From Oopsacas minuta (taxonomy: Eukaryota > Animalia > Porifera), in contig JAKMXF010000006.1 of NCBI GenBank assembly GCA_024704765.1, positions 62,001 through 126,000 of the forward strand: a DNA stretch of 64,000 bases, read 5' to 3'. Shown here in pieces: positions 38,331 through 57,208 of this stretch. Under the pieces are notes generated by a model. That model saw only the letters and a program-made list of their open reading frames with translations. It had not been told where the DNA came from and searched no databases. Position numbers and translations under genes: made by a program. How positions within the stretch are numbered: the first letter of the stretch is position 1; every line of letters starts with the position of its first letter.

Positions 38331-41300
38331 TTAGAGGGATAAACAACTTAAGTAAAACAACTTCCAAACAATGATCAGAGCTTGAGTAAATAAGCTCAGT
38401 TTGACACACAACATTTCTTTTCAATATAAATATACACTGCAACACCACTTCCCATTCGGTTGGAGTGCTTTCAACCTTGGTTCTAGTCGGGAATTAAATA
38501 GAATGCTATTATAACTAATGTGAGACTCACGACAAATCAGGGCCGTAGCCATGAAAATAAAAGTAGTCCGGTTTAATACAGCACAAACAAGACAAAGTAG
38601 ACAGGTTAACTTGTACAATTGAACCAGTTGGTGAATTATTGGAAAATTTGGTAGCAAAATCAGTCTGGTTGAAATGTGACAAACCGGACCGATGGCTACG
38701 GCCCTGATATATAATATAAAAGTGTGACTCTAGCCAGGGCTATAAATCTAAGTCAATAATATTTGTAATTATTCTTCCAGAGGTGGGTTAAACTCCAGAA
38801 GGATCTAAATCGATCTCGGATAGTACTTACTTGTTGAGATCAGGTCAATAGTAAGTCGGAATATAATCATACGTATGTTGCAAAGAAATACAAGAAAAAG
38901 CTTGTAAACTAAGAGCTTACTACATTCCTATGCTCGGGACTGGTTGAATACCGTTAATAACAATTAGATGAAATCCGACCATAACCTGACCAACCTGACT
39001 GAGTGGTTGGGTTAAGCTAAAAAACCTGACCGAGTGGTGCCATATTGGGGAAATTCAGTAACCAAAAGTGGTCAGGTTGAAACCTGACCAATGGCTAAGG
39101 CCCTGTCAGTGCGTAATAATTGATATGCTTGTATACAGATTCATGTACAAAACTCACAAATCCACTAAATAATCAACTAAAATAGGCTCTTCATTTACCA
39201 CGTTCCACTGGCAGCTGGTTCAGATGATAAGTACCCTCAAAGTACCACATGTCGTGATGTCATTGATTGCACCAAATTGCTAACATATAGCGAGATTGTT
39301 TTGTTATCAATATTCTATAAAACACATTAAAAGTAGTAATTAATTTAAGAATATTCGAATTCTACCTATCCAGCTTTGTCAGGATACTAGGAATTTCCTT
39401 TAATGCTGAAATAAGTGAATCCTCGTTATGCGAACTTGTAAAATCACTGTGAAGATCTAGCCATCAAGGATTGCACCCCCTCATCCTTTGACAGGGCAGT
39501 CGCATTGTCACTAATTCAGAGATAGAAACAGGAGTAAAGTTTGTAAACATAATGGTTGATATACCAAACTTACTGCTCGGGTAATATACTCATACTTAGT
39601 TACAACCATTGGCGGGACTCTCAACCTGGGGAATTGGAGTCTATTATTACAACACAAAATCTAGATTGATTACATAAATTACTAAATTATCGCTTAAATT
39701 CATAGACTTCTTAGCTCTTAAGAGTGAGTAAGGACTCGACTGTACAACTCAGGTCCATTGTTATCTCTAAAACTATTCACTATTTTGGCATAAAATGTAT
39801 TATTGTTGAATAGGAATTTGTAGCATGTTTAGTCAGTCATCATCCACATAGGGATGTCTATTAGTTGCAAACTATTTCCAAGTCGAAAGGACGTAATCTG
39901 ATTGCTTACTTAGCAAATATGTTAACAAAATGCTCCGATTTACAACATCTCATTTGTAAGAAAAAAGGACAAACTACAATTATAATGAATTATGACTCAA
40001 TATATTATTTTGTCTATAAATTGGTTGATACTGTACAATATTTGCCCACTTACTAACCAACCTACCATTACGTATATGTAATACAGAATGTGCTATCTGG
40101 CAATGTAGGATAGTTTACTATACTGAAGTATTATAAAATAGTAGGTTCTAAGTGCATATATATGTGTGTGAGTGCTCATTTATGTAATTGGAAATTATAA
40201 TTAGTGAGTGAATAATGTTAAGAGGAGTTCTTGTATACCTTTTGATCGTTGTATTACTCGAAAAGACTGAAACTCAGACAGGTTTGTTAGAGCAACTTTC
40301 TAAACTTAATATGAAAGGTTGAACAATTGTGAAATTGTTCAGATATATTTGCTATTCAATGACAAATTATGGGATGATGTCTTTTAGTTCATGGACTGTT
40401 CGCGATGAGGCGATTGGTGGCTAGGGCAGGAACCAATAATTCACCAAGGATTATCCGAAACAGTGCCATGGTCATACGTTGGATATTTAGTGATTCAATA
40501 GAGTCTCAAATACGAACCCTATTAAGTTTAGTGGTATCATCTCATCTCAATTCTTCCTTCATTATACTCAACAGGGATTCTATCATTGTTAGTACCGAAT
40601 TTCGCATTTACAAGTTTCTCATTTGTAATTTATTGTGTTTTATGAATATAAAGTAAACAAATAATTAAATGTCAAAATATCCTTAGAGACTTGCTCTCTA
40701 CAGAGCGGGCAACATTGCCCATCCCGTTACGTAGCCTGACGTCAAGTTACGTAACTAAACTTCCAATCAGGCATATCGCCAAGGGAGGCTAGGGAGCTGA
40801 GACCCATGGAGAATTTTGAGCCTTCTTGTGAATTAGTTAACTTTACCTTTTCCTAATGATCATATTAGTAGTCTAAGGCCGATGACAGAAGTTCAGTTTC
40901 TCATAACTGAAGGACTTGAATTCTTCTAAGTAATTACTTCTAATTCCTCGTAAAAAGTTGTGCACGGTTCAATTTTGATTTAAAACTTAGGGCTTAGTTT
41001 GGCTAGCATGGCACCTTGACGGTGATCCGATAGATTTCTATAATCTTGTTTGAGTTATTCAATTCGACCTGTTGGTGTTGATTAATTGGTTCAACTTTTT
41101 GTTGATTTCTTCAAATATGCTCCCAGGATCCAGAACCAGATAATTCTCATGTGTATTGTAATTTCCAAGGCAATCCTGATGCCATCCACGGTGCAGTTTT
41201 TACGCTCGCTTCGCTAGTAACTGTAATATATAGGCTAGAGCCAGTGGCGTCGTGTGACTTTGAATTCTGGGTGGGGGTCAATTCAATTATGCAACAAGTT

Positions 41301-41730: not shown

Positions 41731-42390
41731 GTTGACACAGTAAAAAGTATCAACAGCATTAAATATGTCTTCGCCTGTGGTTGTGGTTGTTAGATTTACT
41801 GAGAAGAAAAGATCATTTCGAAGTATGTATTTAGTAGTATATCGAGCGTATACAAGAGAAGTACTTCAGAAGTGATTGTGGTGCTCTCATCTAACTGAAT
41901 TGAGAAGTTATCAGACGCTCGAATTTCATTTAATAATTGTTAGCTATGCCGTCGATTCTTCTCTTTACTGTATCCGCTCATAATAGTATCACTTGTATCT
42001 TCTTGGCTGCTTCATCGCCTTGGAGTATGGATACCATTTCGATACAACAAGGCTCTATCCGCTCTTCCCCAATATTATGGGGTTTTTAGTCTTGGTAATA
42101 TTGAAACTGACATGATAGGAATCCTTGGTAGCTAGTTCGAGATCTTTATTTGTCATACTAAAAGAATCCTTAATTGTAGGCTGTCTGTTTGATACATACA
42201 GTAACCTTTTCCGCTCAAAAACTTGAATCTCCAGGTTCAATGTACTTGGGTGTTTTGTTTGTTGGTGACGTTTGAGTTTGGATGGTTTCATCGCATCATT
42301 AGCAAGTATATTACCCCAGATTACACATTCTGGTTTCGAAACATCAACTCTTGATTCAATAAAACCAAATTTGATATATGTTGGATACTG
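41731..42390 (-). mobile_element. hAT (Buster/Charlie/ZBED5-like) transposase remnant
   Basis: YIKFGF..PECVI.GNILANDAMKPSKLKRHQQTKH..FERK; downstream frames DTVKRRI and FSIQLDEST..TTTGEDIF; frameshifts and stops. Confidence 0.85.
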
Positions 42391-42473
42391 TTCACCCATT
42401 TACTATTCCGACTACTCTCCTGGTTATTGTTCTGTCCATGAACATGTTTACATTTCATGTGCTCCCTATATTG
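42386..42473 (+). pseudogene. Truncated 3' end of a duplicated SRCR exon
   Basis: Near-copy of 42815-42902 (YYSDYSPGYCSVHEHVYISCAPYI) with its own GTGAGT donor; the 5' part is replaced by hAT sequence. Confidence 0.8.
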
Positions 42474-42584
42474 GTGAGTTCATTACCTTCCTTTCCCTTC
42501 TTCTTTTTCCTTTCTACCCTACCTTATCTATATTCACCATTTACTTACCTTTACCTACTGCAAATCATTTGTTTTTCTTTGCAG

Positions 42585-42902
42585 AGAGCGGTACAGTGCG
42601 ACTAACTGAAGGCGACAATGGCCTGGTTGAGGTTTATCTCAACGGTGGCTGGGGCTTTATCTGTGACGATGGATGGGATGGGACTGATGCTGATGTAACC
42701 TGTCAGATATTAGGCTATCATTCAGCTACACAAAGTGATGTTGGACGCTATCATCCAGACACTGACTACAATCTACTCTACCTGAACTGTGTTGGTAGTG
42801 AGACTAGTCTACTCGACTGTACACCCAGTTACTATTCCGACTACTCTCCTAGTTATTGCTCTGCTCATGAACATGTTTACATTTCATGTGCTCCCTATAT
42901 TG
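42585..42902 (+). CDS. Exon: SRCR domain 1
   Basis: VRL..G.VEVY.NGGWG.ICDDGWD..DA.V.CQ.LG...L.C.GSE.SL.DC; TTTGCAG acceptor and GTGAGT donor. Confidence 0.85.
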
Positions 42903-45900
42903 GTGAGTTTCATTTCCTTCTCTTACCTTTTTCATTTTTCTTTTCCCTTATCCTATCTGTATATACGGGATTTAATATGAAAAAAAAATGTTTTTCCGCT
43001 TGAGGCCATCTCAATTTAATTACAGTATATTAATGGAAGCTGGCAATTAGTGTATTCCTGATACGGTGGTCCGGCCGGACTAAATATCTTGTGACAGTGC
43101 ATACAGGCTACAGCATACAGTCTATAGTCTATACTCTATACACTTGTAACACATATACAAGTAGTTCATAAAGTGCATATATGTTCCGCGGCAAGTAGGA
43201 GTGTGAGCAAAGTAGGAATTAAATGCATTCTGAATTTTTACCGGTTGTATTTCCAACATATTTGGAAAAATGATAATTATGAATCAAATGGGGAGCGCTT
43301 CAATAGTTCGAATTTGTATGTCGTCATTTGTTCGACAAGTCTTTCCCATGTTGTAATTTGTTCGGCAAGTATTTTTGATGGTACCATTTGTACATCTTTG
43401 CCCTGAGCGTTGGCCGGAAGTTTCATTGACCCCTACTTGTTGCTATGTGTGTTTATAACTCACTAAGAGGGTGATTGAATGGGAATTTTCTTTGACTATC
43501 TAACTAGATTGCATTTGTAGATTATATGTGCATTTCTATCTCAATATTTGAATAACAGTTGTGGATTTTCATGGTATTATTGTTGGATCTTGGCCTTGAG
43601 AGTGGGTCGTAATATCTCCTCTGTTCCGCAATTCATAAGTCGTCTCGAGTACCAAAAGAAAGAGTTTAATTGCACAATTGCTACCAAGTGACAAATGGAC
43701 TCAAACATAGTTCCGCTACCCGAAACACATAAATGCAATCTAGTTAGATGCGGTACATCACTTCAAAAAGTGGTAACGTACATCGAAGCTGGCCTTGTAT
43801 AGCCGATCTCGATCACCATCCAGTAATTTATCAATCGACGATCCCTTCTAAATTCTCCTCATCAAAGGATATCGATCCTGATCATACAATTTCTGATAGA
43901 CAGTATAATCCGGTTCTTCCATTAGTTCCTAACTCAGAAACAAGAAGGAATCATAGCTATGCTTTATGCGTACACACGCACGATTAACCGAATTCTGTCG
44001 GAAAATGTGGAATTTTATGACGTCAAAAAGATGATAAAATCTCGATTTGGGTGCGGGAATTAGTTAAAACGAAGTGGTAAATTTTAGTGCCCCTTTTCGT
44101 TAAGAAAGTAACACTTCGATCGTAATTGGTTAAGAATCTATATATAAATTCTCACAAGTTAATTAACCCGCCGACTAGATGTACAAGTCCGGAAACGGTT
44201 ACAAAACGAGACTCCGCTTATGTAACCGAACAGGTTGGGCATCCGCAGGGTGACCATATGTCCTGTTATTGCTACATGTCTAAGTTCTCTTTCGTCCTAT
44301 ATTCAGAATTCAAACCGAGACTAGCACTCATAAATCGTATGTTTTTCTCGCTTTAGACTCTAGAATCTGCTTATAAGTATATACGCACTATTATTTGCAA
44401 TGAATTTCTGACATTTCTGAGCGTCAAAATGTTTTCTATGACCGTTGATTCATATTTTAATGTAAATTTTAATGAAATTTTGCCCAATTTGGTCTGGCAA
44501 GAAATATTTGATCCTGCCGGACCAAATATTTTAAACTTCCGGGATAGTTTCGGTTCTACCTGACCATATACATCAGTATATTTTGTCATGCCGCTGCCTG
44601 GCTGAATATTCCCCATCTAATGATACATTGTTCCCTTAATCATTTAGGGGAAGATGTTCTGGGAATATTATCCATGTCCACTAGGGATTTGTGGTCCCCG
44701 AACATTATACAATAGGGAAGATGCTTCTAAGAGCTATCAAAATGTGAATCTGCATGCAAAATATGTAAATCTAAGCGGATTACGTCATTACACAAGAGGA
44801 ATTGGTACAAATTTAACGAGTTCCAACATCAAAGTATAACACGTATCATAAATGCTATAGACTCTGATCTCCTATGGCATATATAGAAAGTGATTTAACT
44901 AGTGCGAACAAACAGTTCCCAACATCAGATTCCTTAGAGAGAACATTACAAGACTGGCAAAATTCAGAATATTTTCGTAATAATTTTATCACTAAATAAT
45001 TGTAATATATCAAATATCTGATTTGTCCGCGAATATAAAATGCAACACAGCCAACATTACGTCATAATTCCAATATATGTAATATATAATTTGTTTCAAA
45101 TACTCTTTAGGATTTCGTTGGTTGAGCGTAAGTTATATATTCAGTGAGTATCAAGGTTGCCAACCTTAAGTCGTTCGTTACCGTTTCAAAATTCGATATA
45201 GTTACAGGTTACCCCCTAGATATATTAGCTTCCGCAGTCACTGAAAACAGGATCTGTGTATCTTGATAGAATTTTTTGTAGAACTTTGATCAAATTTTCT
45301 TATGTCGAACTTTGATCGAATGATGAAAAAGGCAAATTTTGATCAAAGTTCTACTAAAATGTCTCCAGTCGAATTTTGATCGAAATGAGAACTTTCATCG
45401 AAAATGGATAAAATACAACAAAAAATCCAACGATACGCCATTTTACAAAGATTAATAATAATCAATCCAAAGAACTCCATCCAATCATAAAATTAGCATA
45501 GATTCCACACTCCCGTCCTTTAGTAGCTAATAACCAACACAAATAAATACTCCCAGAGCCATAAGGTAGCGAAGTAAATCCCTAATCCCCTCCCAATGGT
45601 ACTCTTTCTAACTAATAAAATATAAAGGGAGTGTGAGATTTATGCTAATTTTATGATTGGATGAAGTTTTGTTGGATTGATTATTATTAATCTTTGTAAA
45701 ATGGCGTATCGTTGGATTTTTTTGTTGTATTTTCTCCATTTTCGATGAAAGTTCTCATTTTCGATCAAAATTCTACAACTTTTCGATCAAAGTTCGACTG
45801 GAGACATTTTGGTAGAACTTTGATCAAAATTTGCCTTTTTCATCACTCGATCAAAGTTCGACATAAGAAAATTTGATCAAAGTTCTACAAAAATTCTATT

Positions 45901-48900
45901 AAAATATACAGATGCTGAAAACAGCAGTGGCATTTTGTTATTACAGTCTGTTATTATAGCACCTTCATATGGTTGTGATGCTATAACAAATGGTGGCACT
46001 TGTTTCAGTTACTTTACTACAAGTAGTGGAGTTAGCTGGGAAAATGCTAGACAACGATGTAACTCATGGGGTTATGATCTAGCTACAGTGACAAGTTCAC
46101 AAGAGAATTCTCTACTGTATAATACAAGATCTAGCTCAAGCTCAGCTGATTGTTGGATTGGACTTCATGATTTACACAGTGAAGGATCATATGTTTGGTC
46201 TGGTGGTAGCTATAGTTCGTATAGAAATTGGAATGATGGTGAACCTAATAATTTATACGATGAAGATTGTGTGCACTTCTTTGATAGTATATATTGGAAT
46301 GATCTCCTCTGTACTCTCACACTTAACTGTTACTTTTGTAGTGCTAATGGTAAGAACACAATATAGATAGTTACGTAACTTAGCGGTTATGTCTGTAATG
46401 CCAATTCCGAATATAATATTTTCAACAACAATGCGATACTTTGTTGGTTTTCTTGTGTGAATGGAATAAGTACTCAAATTTCTGATTTCCTAGGCAAAGG
46501 TGGGCACAGTAAATTTAACTCAGATGTTCGTTAATATGGAAGTGATAGTTAAAGCGTTAACGTTAACATATATTATATAAATGTAGCGGGGTTCAAATAG
46601 GACTTAACTGAAATAGACGATTGTTAGTTAGTAATAATAATATCCGAGGTTACCTAGTACAAGATTTGTAATATATCTAACTACCAATATCATTGTGGGA
46701 ATCCGATGAATCTACAATTACAGGTATAATCAAAGAGTTACTATAAATACTAATTAATGTGATACTGTCATCAGGGCCCAGCAGAGTAGCGATATTACAA
46801 GATTATTATCTATAGACTAAATCACTGTAAGCTACTAAGTTGAATCCGCTATACAAACAACAAAAATGCTGTCTTTTTTTGCTCTAAAACACCTATAAAA
46901 TGAGGATTTGTTGGTTATTTTAGATATGTCTGCTCGCACAACTTTGATATGGAATATTTATTATTTACTGAATAATACGGGATAAGAGATTGTTAAAAGG
47001 AAAGCAAACTTGAATTAACATATTGAAATAAGTCTGATATTAAATTGAAACTGAAAGTTTTAATGAAAATTCGAATCCGGTAATTAACGGATGAACGGTT
47101 TAGTGTCCAGCTTTTGATCCTATGTATTTTAAAGGTGGAGGCACGTTTGTGGACACGATGTGTAAGCAACCGTTGTAGTGTTAGCAAATTGCACTTTTGC
47201 ACTGTGTATATAATATGAGATGTATAGTATTATTTAAATGATTGTTCTTGTGTGTTTTAGTGAACCAATTTGGGCGAATCCAATATTCAAGAAACTACCT
47301 ACCATTACTTGACGATACAGTTCTAACATCAGACACTACTCTATTCTGTATTACAGAGAATAAGTACACTCCACAAGTTGTATGGAGTTATCAGGATCTA
47401 GCTAAGAGTACTACATCTACTCTCACAAGTTATACATCTAGTACTACAGGTGTTAGTTCTCTACGAGTATACATCAGTAGACCAGGATACTATTCTTGTA
47501 GAGTTAAGGTGAATGGAGGGAGTTATAAAACTTATACTGCTCTTATAGCTGATGATCTATCCACAGGTATTTCGAATATTCATAATCTTTTAAGAATCTT
47601 GTGCATATATGTCTTTCAAAATGAAGCTGAGTCGTTTCAATGACCAGCAGGTTCAAGGGTGGCACCAGATCCACTGAGAGGGGGAGCGGGACAAATTCGA
47701 GGGGCCCTTTAAGAACTTGTAATAGGCTGACTAGCAAACCTAAATGGAATTCACAAACTTTCATAGTCTATTGCCACAATTAGTGTAAAATTGTGTATCA
47801 TGACCACACTTGAGCCTGCATTAGGGCTAAGTTTGGTCATGGTTATTGGTTAAGTTTGCTCAAAGTGGTGACAGAATATCAACTTGTGCATAGATTGCTG
47901 TAATATCTCTCTGTCACCAAATTATGGGTAAGTTTGATGATAAGACATCAAGTTGAGAAACCCTCTTATTATATAATATATCGAGATGTATTTGACTTGG
48001 TTAATCTATATGTTTTGACGGTTGTATCAACAAAATTGCAAAGATGTCAACTCTCACTGCAAATTCGTGAGTCCGACAGATTTTAATGGCTCTAAATCTA
48101 AAGGGTATAATTCCTATAATCTATGCTAGCCTAGATTATATTCGGGTTAAACTGGGTCTGGAGGTAATTCTAGGCTGTTACACCGACACTTTTTGGAATG
48201 GTAACTAATGATCCTATACAAATTTAGCCTCACGTCCGACATATATGTCGTTCAAGGCTTCTGGATTACCACTATTACGTGCACGTCCAGATCTCAGAGG
48301 CTCCACTGTATGAGATATTGCATCATATACTCTCCTATTGACATGCAGTAAAAAAAGAAATTGAGATTCGTGGTCAAGTAGAAGACTTCAGTCGCTACAA
48401 ATTCGGTCGTCCCAGTTCCCAAATTTTAACTCAGCTGCCTTGAGTGGCACGTACCGACAAAAAATGGCCCTGGTTGAGCATATCATGTTTTTGTTTTGTA
48501 TTTGCATCAATCAATTGTTATAAAGCAACACTTACACATGCACATGCATATACATATATTTTCTACTAGCTGATGGTACTCTTCGTCTGTACGATGGATC
48601 CACAGAAAATGAAGGTATACTAGAAATCTTTCACGATAATCGCTGGGGTTCTATTTGTGATCACAGTTGGGACTCAAGAGATAGCAAAGTTGCTTGTAAA
48701 CAGATGGGTTTTCCAGGATATAATACGTATTATACTTCATGGAGAATAACAAACATCTACTGGCTGGATCATATTAGATGTAGTGGAAATGAAGCATCTA
48801 TAGCTGATTGTTCTCATTATGGATGGAGAGATGGTCATTGTTCAAGTAATGAAGGTGTTTATCTTAAATGCTATCCTGCAGGTATGTTCAGACAAATAGA

Positions 48901-51900
48901 CAACAAATATGGATTCGTATATATCAATTCGATAACCAGAATATAGAATAATGAAATTAGCAAATATCATTTGGTAAAGCAATATTTGAATATAAATATT
49001 CTCAGTTACTTACTGTTTCCAAATAATTCTCGATTCAATCTATAATATTCATTATTTATACCTACTTTAGTAACCTTCGGAAGAATGGTCGGTGAAGCGG
49101 TAGATCCATTAGACAATTTCCAAACTCTACAACAAAGTACTACACTCTATTGTTCGACAGATGTCAACACCAACACAGTAAGAATAGGATGGAGCTTCAC
49201 AGCATTCGGACAAGAAATAGAAGAGTCGTTGACTTATTCAGCTGAATGGGAATTAGCTTATGGTATGAGCAAGTTGGATATCAGTACATCAAAGTTAGGA
49301 TACTACTCTTGTTATACAAGTAAAGGGGATGTTTCAAAGAAATATACTATTAAGCTAACTCAACCATCTTTGGAAAAAGGTAATGTAACATTATTTCTGG
49401 TAATAAATGAATATGGTTACTACAGTATATATCGATTATACATATTATAACATTCTAGGTTGTCAAGGAGGATACTGTTTCGGAGTATTCAGAACAGATA
49501 CAGCAATCAATTGGGCTACTGCTCAATCAAACTGTATGTCATGGGGAGGAGATCTAGCTTCCGTCCGGTCCATAGGAGAAGAGAAATACATTCTGAGTCT
49601 AGGAGACTCAGATTATGGATCTTGTTGGATAGGACATCATGATAGATACAATGAAGCTGGTAATAATGCTAGTCTATTCGTGTCTGTAGGAGGGAGTAAC
49701 AGTTTCTACAGGAACTTCTATACAAATGAACCTAATGAGAATGATAACGAAGATTGTGTTATGTTAAGAGATTGGAATGAAGGAGGATGGAATGTTACAT
49801 CTTGTGACAGAACACTTAGTTGTTATGTTTGTGGGAAACCAAGTATGTTACATAAATCTAGACAATAAAATGTGATCAGAAATTCCATACTCTATGTGTT
49901 TGCATACTCAGACACATTATTTGGATCTCAATGAGTGTCTGTTTACCCAGATTCAATTTCATTCACTGGGGCGTAACTAGAGATCCCAGATTGAGGAGGC
50001 AAGGATGAATATTTGCCTCAATATAATGGCGATTAACAATAGGAAGATGAGGCAACGCCCGAAGAGGCGAGGAGCCAATTGCTTCCTCTGTCTCAATTGT
50101 AGTTACGCCCTAGATTCATAATACATTTGGGTAAATAAGCCAAATACGCAATCTACATTTAGTAATTCATTTATGTATGCAATTTGTAGATTGCAAAGAT
50201 GGATCTTGCTTTGAAGTATTAACACATAATACATCAATAAACTGGTATTCAGCACTAAATCAGTGTGAACAAAAAGGAGGTTCTCTTGCTTCAATAAGAT
50301 CAGAACCTGAAGAAAAGTTCATACTAAATTTGATGACAGAATCTAGTAGTCAATGTTGGATAGGATTGAATGATCGTAACAGTGAAGCTAACACAAATCC
50401 AAACATGTTTGTTTGGGAAGATGGTAACCAAGCAGTTTATAGACATTTTAGGAATGAGACAGTAAACTCCATTACAGATTGTGTGGTATTATCTCGTGAT
50501 GATGGTACTTGGTTGAGTACTAACTGTGATGTTAATCAATCTTGCTCAATTTGTAAAGGAGCAGGTTAGTTCAAATTCATTATTAATTCAATAAATTTTA
50601 CATCAATAGAAATTTGTTATAGGTTGTGGGGAAATTACAGTGTATATTCTGAGGTTTGTAAGAATATGAGGTTATATTTCTGACATACACACATTATAGT
50701 AGTTATAGCAATCATTCCAAAACTGACCCACGATAGCAGGGGTGGGCAAAAAGGTTAGCTTTCAGGCAGCAGTGAAATTAGGAGCCGACTTGGAGGGCCA
50801 CAAAACTTGAGGATGTTTTCTATACCATGATTATATCCAGGTGAACTTGCAAGTTGTTTTCAGTTTATTACAAAAAACATTCCCATTCTAAGTCACCGAA
50901 ATACGTAGTTTTTTTATATATTGCCTCGAATTAGAAAGCCGTTATAGAAAGGTAGGGTTATATATGGAAGAATATAATATACCTCAAGTCAATGAAGGCT
51001 AAGAGTGTCAGAATAATTCTTTGGGTCGCATTCATGCCCTTTTCAAACTAACCCTGATGGCCGCATAAATTTAGCGAGCGGGCTTCATGCAGCCGCACTT
51101 TGCCCATATGTGCACTATAGTATAATCAACATGTTACTTTGGATACCATATTTGTAGATATCTGTACAACTGGATATGAATTCATCACTGAACAATACGA
51201 TTGTTTGGATATCAATGAGTGTAATGTAGCAAATGATTGTGAACAGATTTGTACCAATACAGAAGGAAATTACTTCTGTTCATGTAGAGAGAGATACTAT
51301 CTGTCTAACTTCACTTCATGCGAGCTTATCTATCTGAATATAGATCTGAATGGTATTAGTAGATCTCAAAGTTCTATTGAACTCTCTTGGAATACAATAT
51401 ATCGTCCTATTCAAAGATTGAGTGAGATTGTGTATCAGGTGTGGATGAGAGATGTTACTTTTGAAAACGACAAAATTTTTCACTTAGTAGGAACCACCAT
51501 CAGACAACAGTTCCAGATATTGAACCTACTACCTTACAGAACTAATGAAATATACATTGTAGCTATTGATAATGATACAACTAACAAATCTAATACAATT
51601 ACAGTACAGACACTAACTGGTATACCCAGTACATCTCCTTCATTGACCGCAATAAGTACAAATCCAATAACGATAAGGTTGAATCTAACTCTCCCAAGTA
51701 GAGAGACACGAAATGGAATAATAACCGGATATAGCATTATGTACACTAGAGTAGAAGAGCTCACCTACAACCATGTACAGACAAATGGCCTAGTACAGAC
51801 ATTTGACATTATTGATCTATCTCCATACTCTATGTACAAGTTTAGAGCAGCAGCCATGACATCAGCCGGTACAGGTGTTTACACAGAATATGTGTATGCC

Positions 51901-53418
51901 CGAACTATGGAGAGCATTCCTACAGGAACTCCAGATATCATATTCCTAGGAAAGTCTGAGAGTTCGCTCTTTCTCCAAATGTTACCACCTGATGTATCAG
52001 AAGAAATCAATGGAGTAATCACATTCTACACGGTAACATACAAAGGAACAGTGATTGATACAGATCTCAATGTCAAAGAAGTATTAGTTGAATCAACAGA
52101 TTTCTTAACTCCCATCAAAGTAAACCTAACTGGCCTTGAAGAAGGAGTTGAGTACCAAATACAAGCTAGGATTAGTACATCTGTAGGAGGGGGTCCATAC
52201 TCTTCTGCTGTTACAGTAACAACAATAGAAACTGCTCCTACAGGTCCTCCTCTACAATTCAGGATTATTCTACAACTACCAACCATACTAACTCTGTATT
52301 GGACTCCTCCTGAACTAGAATTACAGAATGGTGTCATCACTGGATATTACATACATTATCATGGTGTATATATTGATACTCAAGAGATTTCCTTCACAAC
52401 TCAATCTTTGTATGTGAATCTGACTAATTTGGAAGAAGGAGCTCTCTATGAGATATCAGTATGTGCTCTAAGTGCAGCTGGAGAGGGACCTTGTGTGGAA
52501 TCAACTAATCGTACAAGAGAGATACCCCTAGGACAACCTCCACAGAATGTACAGGTAGAAGTGAATGGAGCTACTTCCATCCTCGTTTGTTGGGATAATT
52601 TGTTGAAAAGTGAAGAGAATGGAATAATATTGAACTATGTGATTACTGCTGAAGGACAAAGTCATGACAAAAGAGTTTATGAGCGGACTGCTAACTCTAC
52701 TGCTAGATGTTATACTTGTAATAATCTACAAGAAGCCAATGAATATAGAATAAGTATGACTGCAGAGAATAGTGCTGGTACAAGTCCGTCCTCACCAGTT
52801 ATTGTGGTCATTACTGAAGAAGATATACCTTCTGCAGCTCCAATTAACATCTTTGGTATTGGGAATCAAAATGTCATTGTTCTTCTGTGGGCACCACCTC
52901 TCCTATCAGATCAGAATGGTATTATCATAAAGTATGAAATTTGTTATTTTGGTATGATTATTGATAAAACTAAGTATCATATTCAATCAACGGCTGCTAG
53001 TGCCATTATTTCAGGTCTTGATGAAGGAGAGACTTATCACATTAAAGTACGTGCTTATACATTAAAGGGGCCTGGACCCTATTCTCTTATCATTAACATA
53101 AATACCATTGAAACTCCTCCGTCTGCTCCTCCTACTAATGTTACTCTAATTCCAACCTCTTCTACACAGCTTCTTGTTACTTGGGAAGAACCTCCTTTAG
53201 CAGATAAGAATGGAGTTATTACAAATTATGATATTACTATCTCTCCTTCTAACCGACAACTTATTCGGGTAGAAGCCTCAGTAAGGGCTTATACTTTTAG
53301 GGATCTTGATCATGTGACTAACTACTCTGTTAGAGTTAGAGCTAGAACTCTACCAGGACCTGGTCCTTACTGTGATCTTGTTACAGCTACCACGCTAGGG
53401 AAGTCACCTGTATATTAG
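42585..53418 (+). CDS. Mosaic extracellular protein SRCR-CTLD-Ig-SRCR-Ig-CTLD-CTLD-EGF-cbEGF-7xFN3 (5'-incomplete gene model)
   Basis: Eight exons on the same strand with GT-AG junctions that join in phase 1 and give one open frame. That they form a single transcript is inferred. Confidence 0.7.
45250..45915. mobile_element. Foldback-type element with ~265-290-bp arms
   Basis: Arms 45250-45514 and 45627-45915 built from AACTTTGATC(A/G)AA subrepeats; 8-bp TSD TGAAAACA; second copy at 56491-57208. Confidence 0.85.
45960..46349 (+). CDS. Exon: C-type lectin domain 1 (EPN + WND intact)
   Basis: SWENARQRC..LAT..CWIGL..W..GEPNN..EDCV...WNDLLC..YFC. Confidence 0.9.
47261..47566 (+). CDS. Exon: Ig-like domain 1
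   Basis: TLFC...VVW...GYYSCRV pattern; TTTTAG acceptor and GTATTT donor, phase 1. Confidence 0.7.
48570..48881 (+). CDS. Exon: SRCR domain 2
   Basis: LRLYDG..NEGILEIFHDNRWGSICDHSWD..DSKVACKQMGF..WLDHIRCSGNEASIADC..C..EGVYLKC. Confidence 0.9.
49071..49379 (+). CDS. Exon: Ig-like domain 2
   Basis: TLYC...IGW...GYYSCY; paralogous to Ig-like domain 1; phase 1. Confidence 0.7.
49459..49842 (+). CDS. Exon: C-type lectin domain 2
   Basis: NWATAQSNC..GGDLAS..CWIG..EPNE..EDCV..WNVTSC. Confidence 0.85.
50190..50564 (+). CDS. Exon: C-type lectin-like domain 3
   Basis: NWYSALNQC..GGSLAS..CWIGLND..FVW..DCVV..W...C; sugar-binding motifs absent. Confidence 0.85.
50737..51112. mobile_element. hAT-type MITE in the last intron
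   Basis: CAGGGGTGGGCAAA / TTTGCCCATATGTG ends; TSD CACGATAG / CACTATAG. Confidence 0.7.
51158..53418 (+). CDS. Giant exon: EGF tail + Ca-binding EGF + seven FN3 repeats
   Basis: DINEC..CEQICTNTEGNYFCSC, then seven repeats with the P..PP..W..P..NG.I..Y..L....Y...A.T..G.G pattern, ending at TAG 53416-53418. Confidence 0.9.
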
Positions 53419-55122
53419 TCGTATTTCTCTGTATTTCAAAAACTAACACCCCTATATCTTGTATATACTTATGTAGTATTCTAGTATATTGTTAGAAATA
53501 GGTATTTGGTGTGGTAATTATTTTTGTGTTAACTATATGATTACACATACACACGTGTAAGATACGTATATTCCCTTGTTCTGTTCCGTAACTACAACCA
53601 CATCCTTGAGGATCAGTTCAATACTATATATTATATGGTCAATACTATTCGTAAAGACCTGGGCAGCAAAAAACACCACCTTTTCTGATTATTGCCATTA
53701 TTTCTAGCTGGCCATAATACATAATATATCCTAGCATAACGTAAAGCAGCTTATATTTGCGGGTTTCATGTAGTGAATGTCTCCCTATAGCAGTTTTCCT
53801 TGGAGAAATACTATATAGTCAACATAATATTCTTTTCACAATTCTCAGTAGCCCTGGGGTTGTCGGCAATCCCTAGCGACGCCTATGATTTCCTGTTTGG
53901 TATTCCATTATAACATCATGTGTAAATATAAGTTGTTCATTTTCAGTTCCTTTCTCACAAGCCTTTATCAGAGGTTGATTCTTCCTCAATTCTACTTCTC
54001 TCTTTGTTTACGATTTTTACCAAAATTGTCTTCGCCGATAAGATAAACTGTCACCATCACCTTGTGAATATGTATGTTATCTATAATTATAAATCCAAAC
54101 AATGAAGTTATATAAGTATCTGGATATCTGTATATATGTAAATGAGGCCTCAATAAAATTATCAGTGTAACCATGGCTGCCTCTAATGACCAAAAGGCGG
54201 GATCTCGGGAGGTTAGCCATTTTTGGCGGGAAATTGAATAAAAGCCTTATAATGAAAGTACTAAGAGCGTGCTCACACAGGGACGTCGCCAGGATTCTTT
54301 ACCTAAGAAGACAGGACGAGGGGCAATGTGCTTTCAAGAGTTTAGCAGGAGACATGCCAAGTGGCTGATCTATAAATTTCTAGTTGGGTATAACCATCCA
54401 ACTAGTTAGCGTCGTCGTGTGGCCTTGAAACCTGGGAGAGCACAAGTTCAATCTATTGAGCAATAAGTTCTAGATGAGGGATCCTGTAAACAATCAGTAA
54501 AGACTGTCCAAGAACGAAACCTATCTTAAGAAATAACGTTTGGTTTGCAATTTGCCCAGAAAGTTGAGATTTTTCTGGACGAAAATCCAATCAAACATCA
54601 CGCAAGTTTGTGTTCCCTATCTTACTATTCGAAAAGGAACACGATAATTTTACTTCCTTTTAACCATCCTTTTTCACGTCATAAAATGGTATATTTTCCC
54701 GGCCGTATTCGGTTAATGCAGTACGCGACAAGTAATTCTCACTGATATCATATACATATTCTCTACAGGAAGTATGTCCATTAATTGACAGAGATACAGA
54801 CAATTGGGAGATTAACAATTTACTGTATTGGAGAGGGGCAAATAAACTATAATCTGACCAATCCTTATCAGATATTTATGATTAATGTGAAACATTTCAT
54901 GTTGTTATTCATTATTGCTTTGATTTGTATTAATTATATTTTATACAAAGTTTATCAAATTAGTTTTGTAACATAACTAAAGTGATTATCTGTCAAATTT
55001 CGAAATTCTATCTATAGGATTATATTGACAGATGGTTAGAAGCAATACAATTCTATCCAATCGATTAGGTATAAAATGAAATGTATAATGAATAAGTTAT
55101 TTATGAATAAACAAATTGTACA

Positions 55123-55686
55123 ATGGGAAAAGCAGTAAGCAAGTCTAATAAGAAATCGCATAAGGCAGCAAGCAAGCAAAACGTGTTATTGCTGGGACTT
55201 AGTAGGAGCGGGAAGAGCACGTTAGTAGCGCGGTTGCTGTCTGAGAAGATATCAGAGTATAATCCAACAGAAGGGTTTAATCTAGTCAACTATTCTAGAG
55301 AAGATGATACAGGGTCATGTTTAAATTTATGGGATTTAGGTGGGAGTAAGCTGGATAGAATTGGCTGGCAGTTCTTCTACCCTGTTACAGATGGGATTAT
55401 GTACATAATAGATAGCGAAGATAGATATCATTTAGAGGAAAACAAAAGACAACTAAACCTTATACTTAATAATAATATATTACAGAAAGTCCCACTTGTG
55501 ATTGTAGCAAACAAACAGGATATAGAGGGAGCAATAGATGAGACAGAAATAAAGAGTCTGTTAGAATTGAATAATGCATCGAATATGCTTTGTGGGATAT
55601 TCGGCACAAGTCAGTCTATTGAGAGTTCAATAGCTTCATGTCTGCATACACTAGTCAATGAAATGGAAACAAAACACATTCGTTAA
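55123..55686 (+). CDS. Arf-like (ARL) small GTPase, intronless, 187 aa
   Basis: MGKAVS myristoylation-type start, G1 GLSRSGKS, G2 PTEGFN, G3 WDLGGS, G4 NKQD. Confidence 0.9.
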   Translation: MGKAVSKSNKKSHKAASKQNVLLLGLSRSGKSTLVARLLSEKISEYNPTEGFNLVNYSREDDTGSCLNLWDLGGSKLDRIGWQFFYPVTDGIMYIIDSEDRYHLEENKRQLNLILNNNILQKVPLVIVANKQDIEGAIDETEIKSLLELNNASNMLCGIFGTSQSIESSIASCLHTLVNEMETKHIR

Positions 55687-56490: not shown

Positions 56491-57208
56491 GCATCTGTGT
56501 ATTTTGATAGAATTTTTTGTAGAACTTTGATCAAAATTTCTTATGTCGAACTTTGATCGAATAATGAAAAAGGCAAATTTTGATCAAAGTTCTACTTAAA
56601 TATCTTCAGTCGAACTTTGATCGAAAAACGAGAACTTTGATCGAAACATTTTCGTGCTCCACGACACCACAATATTCAGGGTGGCACCCTGATCCCCCAT
56701 GTACTGCCACAATGCACCAGAGACTCGACTGATTTCAATCTAGGACGTGCTAGCACTTTATATCTTATTAATTAGAAAGAGTACCATTGGTAGGGGATTA
56801 GGGATTTATTTCGCTACCTTATGGCTCTGGGAGTATTTATTTTTGTTCGTTATTAGTTACTAAAGGACAGGAGTGTGGAATTTATGCTAATTTTATGATT
56901 GGATTGAGTTTTGTTGGATTGATTATTGTAAATCTTTGTAAAATAGGCGGATCGTTAGATTTTTTGTTTATTTTCTCCATTTTCTATCAAAGTTCTCACT
57001 TTTCGATCAAAGTTCTCATTTTCGCTCAAAGTTTTCGTTTTTCGATCAACGTTCTCATTTTAGATCAAAATTCGACAATTTTTCGATCAAAGTTCGACTT
57101 TGGACATTTTAGTAGGACTTTGATCAAAATTTGCCTTTTTCATCATTCGATCAAAGTTCTACATAAGAAAATTTGATCAAAGTTCTACAAAAAATTCGAT
57201 CAAAATAA
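56491..57208. mobile_element. Foldback element copy 2, opposite orientation to 45250-45915
   Basis: Same arms and subrepeats; central spacer reverse-complemented; right terminus deleted into the presumed CAAATAAT TSD. Confidence 0.8.

Follow-up and report, generated by a model that had tools for sequence, protein, structure and literature searches.

A nine-exon mosaic gene of the glass sponge Oopsacas minuta, with SRCR, C-type lectin, Ig, EGF, and fibronectin modules and a predicted secreted product

The sequence considered here (the window) is a 64,000-nt stretch of the 61.46-Mb, 365-contig assembly of Oopsacas minuta (contig C6:62001-126000), and coordinates given below without a contig name refer to it. 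On its forward strand is a gene of nine exons whose product is already present in GenBank as KAI6661817.1 (database record P0192), a protein of 1573 aa named “Phosphatidylinositol phosphatase PTPRQ-like isoform X2”. A first-pass annotation of positions 42585-53418, which make up the 3' 11 kb of the gene and hold eight of its exons, had described a mosaic assembled by exon shuffling, with phase-1 joins, one domain in each small exon, and a single open frame. All of these structural features were confirmed, the open frame being identical, over nine phase-1 exons, to that of the public gene model; the exon encoding the signal peptide had been overlooked.

Gene structure

Exon 1 (40215-40281), located by scanning for ATG-initiated hydrophobic exons ending at a phase-1 donor, contains the start codon and signal peptide (MLRGVLVYLLIVVLLEKTETQT) together with base 1 of a split codon, and is followed by the donor gtttgt. 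It corresponds to residues 1-22 of KAI6661817.1 and places the start of the gene 2.4 kb upstream of the exon for the first SRCR domain. Exons 2 to 8 encode one domain each: SRCR1 (exon 2, 42585-42902, 318 nt, residues 24-128 of KAI6661817.1), the C-type lectin domain CTLD1 (exon 3, 45960-46349, 390 nt), Ig1 (exon 4, 47261-47566, 306 nt), SRCR2 (exon 5, 48570-48881, 312 nt), Ig2 (exon 6, 49071-49379, 309 nt), CTLD2 (exon 7, 49459-49842, 384 nt), and CTLD3 (exon 8, 50190-50564, 375 nt). Exon 9 (51158-53418) encodes a calcium-binding EGF domain and seven FN3 repeats and ends with the stop codon (53416-53418).

Exons 2-9 have AG acceptors and GT donors at all borders, and the lengths of the seven small exons, each of them phase 1-1, are all multiples of three. 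All eight junctions are phase 1, with the codon split after its first base; if the three phases are assumed to be equally likely, the chance of eight phase-1 introns out of eight is about 1.5e-4. For CTLD3, an acceptor at the upstream AG at 50163 was considered and rejected in favor of 50190 on the basis of a paralogue and a Vazella transcript, both described below, and of the GenBank protein (P0006, P0013, P0192). The nine exon translations are exact, ordered substrings of KAI6661817.1, with a single split-codon residue between each. The public O. minuta gene models were made by BRAKER1/Augustus with RNA-seq intron hints (PMC10280926).

Domain content

Searches were run exon by exon and, at full length, with database records P0013 and P0192 as queries. 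Both SRCR exons belong to the SRCR superfamily, with scores of 63 and 85 bits for PF00530 against a cut-off of 26.1 (E 3e-17 for SRCR1 and 6e-24 for SRCR2) and six cysteines per domain. The three CTLD exons scored 51-65 bits for PF00059, against a cut-off of 22.6 (Lectin_C E 7e-14, 3e-13, and 1e-17 for CTLD1, CTLD2, and CTLD3), and PDB matches agree on the CTLD fold. CTLD1 has both EPN and WND motifs, CTLD2 has EPN with WNV instead of WND, and CTLD3 has neither; in PDB alignments, the EPN and WND positions coincide with residues of the calcium site in known CTLDs. Among solved structures, the CTLDs of the mannose-receptor family, DC-SIGN, and CD23 are the closest.

The seven FN3 repeats can be read directly in the exon 9 translation, a 765-codon open stretch (Pfam fn3 E 3.5e-70). 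Six of them are above the Pfam threshold, and the first is weak or divergent (E 7e-4 on its own); the EGF_CA match in this exon is just below threshold. Pfam matches to the Ig exons are weak (E 0.001-0.05, the former for Ig1 against Ig_3), and the Ig2 stretch had none in the initial scan. A profile built from 11 sequences best matched MuSK Ig3 (E 1.7e-6), then NCAM2, DSCAM, and antibody domains, and an AlphaFold model of Ig2 (pLDDT 89.4) matched nothing but Ig domains in Foldseek, although the TM-scores are modest (0.5-0.6). The Ig1 exon is homologous to that of Ig2 (E 8e-8). Identity of SRCR1 to SRCR2, CTLD1 to CTLD2, and Ig1 to Ig2 is only 31-41%.

Relatives of the core of the gene

The genome contains a single close paralogue of exon 9, located at C222:437329-439602 (61% identity). 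It belongs to the gene for KAI6654365.1, a protein of 1244 aa with a signal peptide followed by SRCR, Ig, CTLD, CTLD, EGF, and seven FN3 domains in the same order and with the same exon junctions, and with a signal exon of its own; the two proteins are 60-63% identical. In DNA the paralogue locus aligns with the window only from SRCR2 onward, exon 5 being the first in common, with identities of 71% (nt) and 57% (aa) for SRCR2, 64% (aa) for Ig2, and 80% (aa) for CTLD2. The SRCR1-CTLD1-Ig1 block, which lies between the signal exon and this core in the KAI6661817.1 gene, is absent from the paralogue. The paralogue's signal exon is about 0.5 kb upstream of its SRCR exon and is weakly resembled by exon 1 in the window, both ending CAG/GTTTGTT.

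A transcript from Vazella pourtalesii (EP00800_P016553, 70% identity) joins CTLD2, CTLD3, EGF, and seven FN3 domains with the same junction residues; its 5' end is cut inside CTLD2, so that the comparison covers the part from CTLD2 to the stop. The stop codon directly after FN3-7 is common to the KAI6661817.1 gene, the paralogue, and the Vazella transcript. Several ENA assemblies contain exon-sized open reading frames (ORFs) with 67-75% identity, sometimes with three of them together on a contig; no DNA upstream of these orthologues (P0001-P0012) was found among the JGI metagenome contigs scanned. Outside O. minuta and Vazella, a search of 5.8 billion sequences, limited to certain length windows, did not yield a protein with this architecture, nor did one appear among the top 150 matches of a full HMMER scan, and the restriction of the architecture to glass sponges is supported.

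Between the window and the paralogue, four of the five exons in common have a ratio of nonsynonymous to synonymous divergence (dN/dS) of 0.21-0.32, the synonymous sites of Ig2 being saturated. The core is under purifying selection in both copies. Synonymous divergence (dS) is near 1, except for CTLD2 (49459-49842 compared with C222:435751-436146), where a value of 0.42 suggests either gene conversion between the loci or constraint on synonymous sites. The paralogue also has an inverted partial copy, head-to-head with it on the minus strand at C222:426441-431010. In this copy the Ig exon has a TAA stop and a Tyr/Ser-rich insertion and there is an FN3 fragment with stops, along with two intact CTLD exons whose likeness to those in the window equals that of the plus-strand copy.

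The paralogue's signal exon, close to its SRCR exon, together with introns that are much longer at the 5' end of the KAI6661817.1 gene than in its core, could mean that the predictor merged two genes here, a short 5' gene (signal peptide, SRCR1, CTLD1, and Ig1) and a paralogue-like core gene starting before SRCR2. At 47800-47848 there is a weak candidate for a second signal exon, which is hydrophobic, starts with Met, and has a phase-1 donor. This candidate, however, is short, has no charged N-region, and is unlike exon 1 of the paralogue, whereas the exon at 40215 resembles it. Ig1 is not followed by a stop codon or terminal exon, its good phase-1 donor fits the SRCR2 acceptor, and the public model, made with RNA hints, runs through all nine exons. 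A merger is considered unlikely, and a single gene is preferred.

Relatives of the additional exons

The SRCR1 exon has a close relative at C311:20218-20535. Both are 318 nt long, with 89.6% nucleotide and 84% protein identity, and the similarity continues into the introns (85% over 75 nt upstream and 87% over 60 nt downstream), for a total of about 450 nt at 85-90%. Their dS is 0.21, compared with about 1 for the split from the paralogue, and their dN/dS is 0.41. The C311 exon belongs to the gene for KAI6650378.1, whose domains are SRCR-Ig-GPS-7tm_2-VWA, and encodes the first of these; the signal peptide of that protein is a different one. To judge by these values, the likeness is the product of a DNA-level copy or a conversion tract, in either direction, younger than the paralogue split. 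The possibility that the C311 locus is a full paralogue was rejected: it is an adhesion-GPCR gene, and the SRCR exon is all that the two have in common.

CTLD1 and Ig1 have their relatives in large arrays of lectin and Ig exons, with 58-63% aa identity to the CTLD exons (more than 130) and 50-58% to the Ig exons (more than 120); for the CTLD1-Ig1 pair compared with the alternating arrays, identity is 52-63%. In arrays on C343, C44, C14, C16, and C188, the two types alternate with a period of about 1 kb, and the exon borders also fit phase 1-1, according to a heuristic boundary check. Altogether these exons are spread over C343, C44, C14, C16, C188, C11, C277, C312, C111, C345, and C99. Pfam scans of two proteins, KAI6647376.1, which stems from an array other than that on C343, and KAI6658178.1, agree with lectin/Ig membrane receptors having phosphatase or tyrosine-motif tails. 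The O. minuta genome paper makes no mention of lectins, scavenger receptors, or fibronectin (PMC10280926), and a literature search found no paper on glass-sponge lectin/Ig genes.

Relatives of the EGF-FN3 exon

Apart from the paralogue, the EGF-7FN3 exon is colinear over its full length, at 36-37% identity, with the opening part of individual exons that run to 1,800-3,600 codons. These giant exons continue with more FN3 domains (12-13 in all), followed by HRM or hEGF and by GAIN, GPS, or both, and have a DSL domain upstream. The O. minuta examples, which are adhesion-GPCR-like, begin at C22:535214 and C333:49570. That the KAI6661817.1 gene is simply a truncated copy of such a giant was considered and rejected, because the giants' upstream exons hold DSL rather than SRCR or CTLD.

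The giants are unusual in their own right, as a Notch-ligand-like head on an adhesion-GPCR-like body. The upstream exons at C22:534212-541000 and C333:47503-54999 match DSL (Delta/Serrate ligand) with E 3e-14 and 6e-11, those of the C22 gene also having a weak MNNL match. In each locus a single exon of at least 1,800-1,900 codons encodes cbEGF, 12-13 FN3, and hEGF; the C22 exon continues with HRM, GAIN, and GPS, while in the C333 exon only GPS was found.

Because SRCR1, CTLD1-Ig1, and EGF-7FN3 have relatives in three other extracellular families, the KAI6661817.1 gene is a composite of exons common to those families. Exon shuffling, as the first-pass annotation had proposed, is supported, with relatives identified for the additional exons (SRCR1 in the adhesion-GPCR gene, CTLD1-Ig1 in the arrays), and the suggestion that the molecule is lineage-specific agrees with the finding of this architecture only in glass sponges among the databases searched. 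The same annotation had recognized the architecture from no characterized protein. This needs to be amended in that GenBank already includes an annotation of the gene, misnamed, and that a paralogue and a Vazella relative exist; the core family, present in at least two glass-sponge species, is uncharacterized.

Introns and neighboring sequence

Intron 1 contains the remnant of a duplicated SRCR exon (42388-42533, plus strand), recognized as direct repeat D1 and by alignment, which comprises the last 86 nt of the exon with its gtgagt donor and some 60 nt of the adjacent intron. The 86 nt match the end of SRCR1 (3') at 93% identity and adjoin a transposon-like ORF fragment of 114 codons on the minus strand (42058-42399), whose weak zinc finger, of the Spin-doc type, is below threshold in Pfam (zf-C2H2_12, E 0.0017). 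The fragment is probably from a transposase. The other half of the remnant exon was not found upstream of this fragment by tblastn at E<5. On the plus strand the frame is open from 42269 into SRCR1, and a cryptic in-frame exon with an acceptor at 42303 is conceivable.

Intron 2 is enlarged by a foldback (palindromic) repeat element of about 670 nt (45248-45917) with nested, near-perfect arms (inverted repeats I1-I4). At least 20 near-full-length copies with 83-93% identity are present genome-wide, which suggests a transposon of the miniature inverted-repeat or foldback type; a fragmented copy is found at 56491-57207. Downstream of the gene, on the same strand and 1.7 kb past the stop, is an intronless ORF of 191 codons for an Arf-family GTPase (55111-55683; Pfam Arf E 6e-37).

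The broken SRCR copy and transposon-like fragment in intron 1 and the foldback element in intron 2 are what might be expected if the three additional exons were decaying passengers, the working product being a paralogue-like isoform with the donor at 40281 spliced to 48570. Since all of the exons concerned are phase 1-1, such skipping would keep the frame. All three exons, however, are open, with canonical splice sites and with their cysteines and the EPN and WND motifs kept, and the dN/dS of SRCR1 relative to the C311 exon, at the low dS noted above, is not that of neutral decay. This explanation is improbable.

Predicted product and GenBank name

Besides the signal peptide, KAI6661817.1 has no 19-residue hydropathy window above 1.5, and so no membrane span. 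No phosphatase (Y_phosphatase, PF00102), GPS, GAIN, or 7tm domain was found by Pfam in the protein or its exons. There are 15 N-glycosylation sequons. The product is predicted to be secreted, because it is without a membrane span and without a phosphatase domain, and the name “PTPRQ-like” is a misnomer. The same can be observed for the paralogue KAI6654365.1 (“RPTP delta-like”), which likewise has neither phosphatase domain nor membrane span, both names deriving from FN3 similarity only.

That the gene instead encodes a membrane receptor, either a receptor tyrosine phosphatase or an adhesion GPCR, with 3' exons that were missed, would fit the GenBank name, the homology of the FN3 exon to adhesion-GPCR-like ectodomains, and the phosphatase domain carried by other O. 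minuta lectin proteins (P0194), but is very improbable given the in-frame stop after FN3-7 shared with the paralogue and the Vazella ORF, the unrelated Arf-family GTPase as the next open frame downstream, and a protein with no Y_phosphatase, GPS, or 7tm domain and no hydrophobic span.

Comparison with known mosaic proteins

KAI6661817.1 is a further mosaic SRCR/lectin protein of a familiar kind. Secreted or surface SRCR mosaics, expanded and reshuffled in sponges, are known from sponges and sea urchins, among them the “multiadhesive protein” of Geodia cydonium (FN3, SRCR, and CCP) and DMBT1-like proteins. Some 123 SRCR partner domains have been listed, including EGF, fibronectin, and Ig (PMC10855680), and the SRCR domains of Amphimedon are reported as having three exons each. 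KAI6661817.1 differs from these mosaics in that it has no CUB, ZP, or CCP and that its SRCR domains, of which there are only two, are encoded by one exon each. With no Pfam match to CUB, ZP, or Calx-beta, it does not group with DMBT1-type proteins or aggregation factors (Wreath has no Pfam model). Three CTLDs and a seven-FN3 rod combined with SRCR were not found outside glass sponges in the databases searched.

The macrophage mannose receptor family (MRC1, MRC2, PLA2R, DEC-205) includes the solved structures that CTLD1 and CTLD2 match best (E 1e-35 to 1e-15), and similarly has serial CTLDs of which only some have a sugar site. Its members, however, have a ricin-type domain, an FNII domain, 8-10 CTLDs, and a membrane span, while KAI6661817.1 has only three CTLDs, no ricin or FNII domain by Pfam, no span, and no cytoplasmic tail; it has only CTLDs in common with this family and is not a member of it.

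Among glass-sponge proteins, the lectin/Ig receptors (e.g., KAI6647376.1) have long arrays, a membrane stalk, and a tyrosine-motif or phosphatase tail, in contrast to KAI6661817.1, which has a single CTLD-Ig unit and is predicted to be secreted; exons are held in common, but it does not belong to that family. The adhesion-GPCR-like giants go on past FN3-7 with more FN3, HRM or hEGF, GAIN, and GPS, where KAI6661817.1 stops. It is not an adhesion GPCR, having neither GAIN or GPS nor 7tm_2 (GPS and 7tm_2 are found in KAI6650378.1), and with neither a membrane span nor PF00102 it is not a receptor-type tyrosine phosphatase.

Proposed origin and function

The best overall explanation, to which a probability of about 75% might be given, is an intact nine-exon gene of composite origin for a secreted mosaic that may act as a glycan binder. 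Its product would be a secreted glycoprotein with, in order, a signal peptide, SRCR, CTLD, Ig, SRCR, Ig, two CTLDs, cbEGF, and seven FN3 domains. The signal peptide, the lack of an anchor, the 15 sequons, and the seven-FN3 rod make a soluble, multivalent, calcium-dependent glycan binder the most likely form for it, in which the site would be complete in CTLD1 and partial in CTLD2. Further surfaces for binding may be provided by the SRCR and Ig modules, with the FN3 rod serving as a docking arm or spacer, and the whole could cross-link or coat glycosylated surfaces, whether of microbes, cells, or matrix. A role in defense cannot be told from one in adhesion on the basis of sequence.

Several points weigh against this explanation. 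The introns at the 5' end are long (2.3, 3.1, 0.9, and 1.0 kb) and repeat-bearing, unlike those of the compact core, and the junctions of the three additional exons are drawn only from the public gene model and from splice and phase logic. The SRCR1-CTLD1-Ig1 block may have been either gained here or lost in the paralogue. CTLD3 has no sugar-site motifs, and CTLD2 lacks the Asp of WND. Sugar binding, secretion, and an immune or adhesive role are all read from motifs.

A more specific, and doubtful, extension would make the product a glass-sponge-specific soluble adaptor that recently captured an SRCR domain from an adhesion-GPCR gene and a CTLD-Ig unit from the lectin/Ig paired-receptor family. 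In that case the secreted protein might serve as a decoy or as a bridging opsonin for the ligands of those receptors, with frame-neutral skipping of 1-1 exons tuning the modules displayed.

Significance

The KAI6661817.1 gene, already in GenBank under a wrong name, offers a clean and datable case of domain-exon shuffling in an early-branching animal, in which every module is a phase 1-1 exon, the SRCR1 exon still has intron flanks in common with its relative in another gene, and the relatives of all parts can be named within one 61-Mb genome. The two wrong GenBank names, “PTPRQ-like” and “RPTP delta-like”, would mislead censuses of phosphatases. For the biology of glass sponges, the finding would mean that they make a secreted counterpart built with modules of a large lectin/Ig receptor family, itself undescribed, which thereby gains a possible soluble partner.

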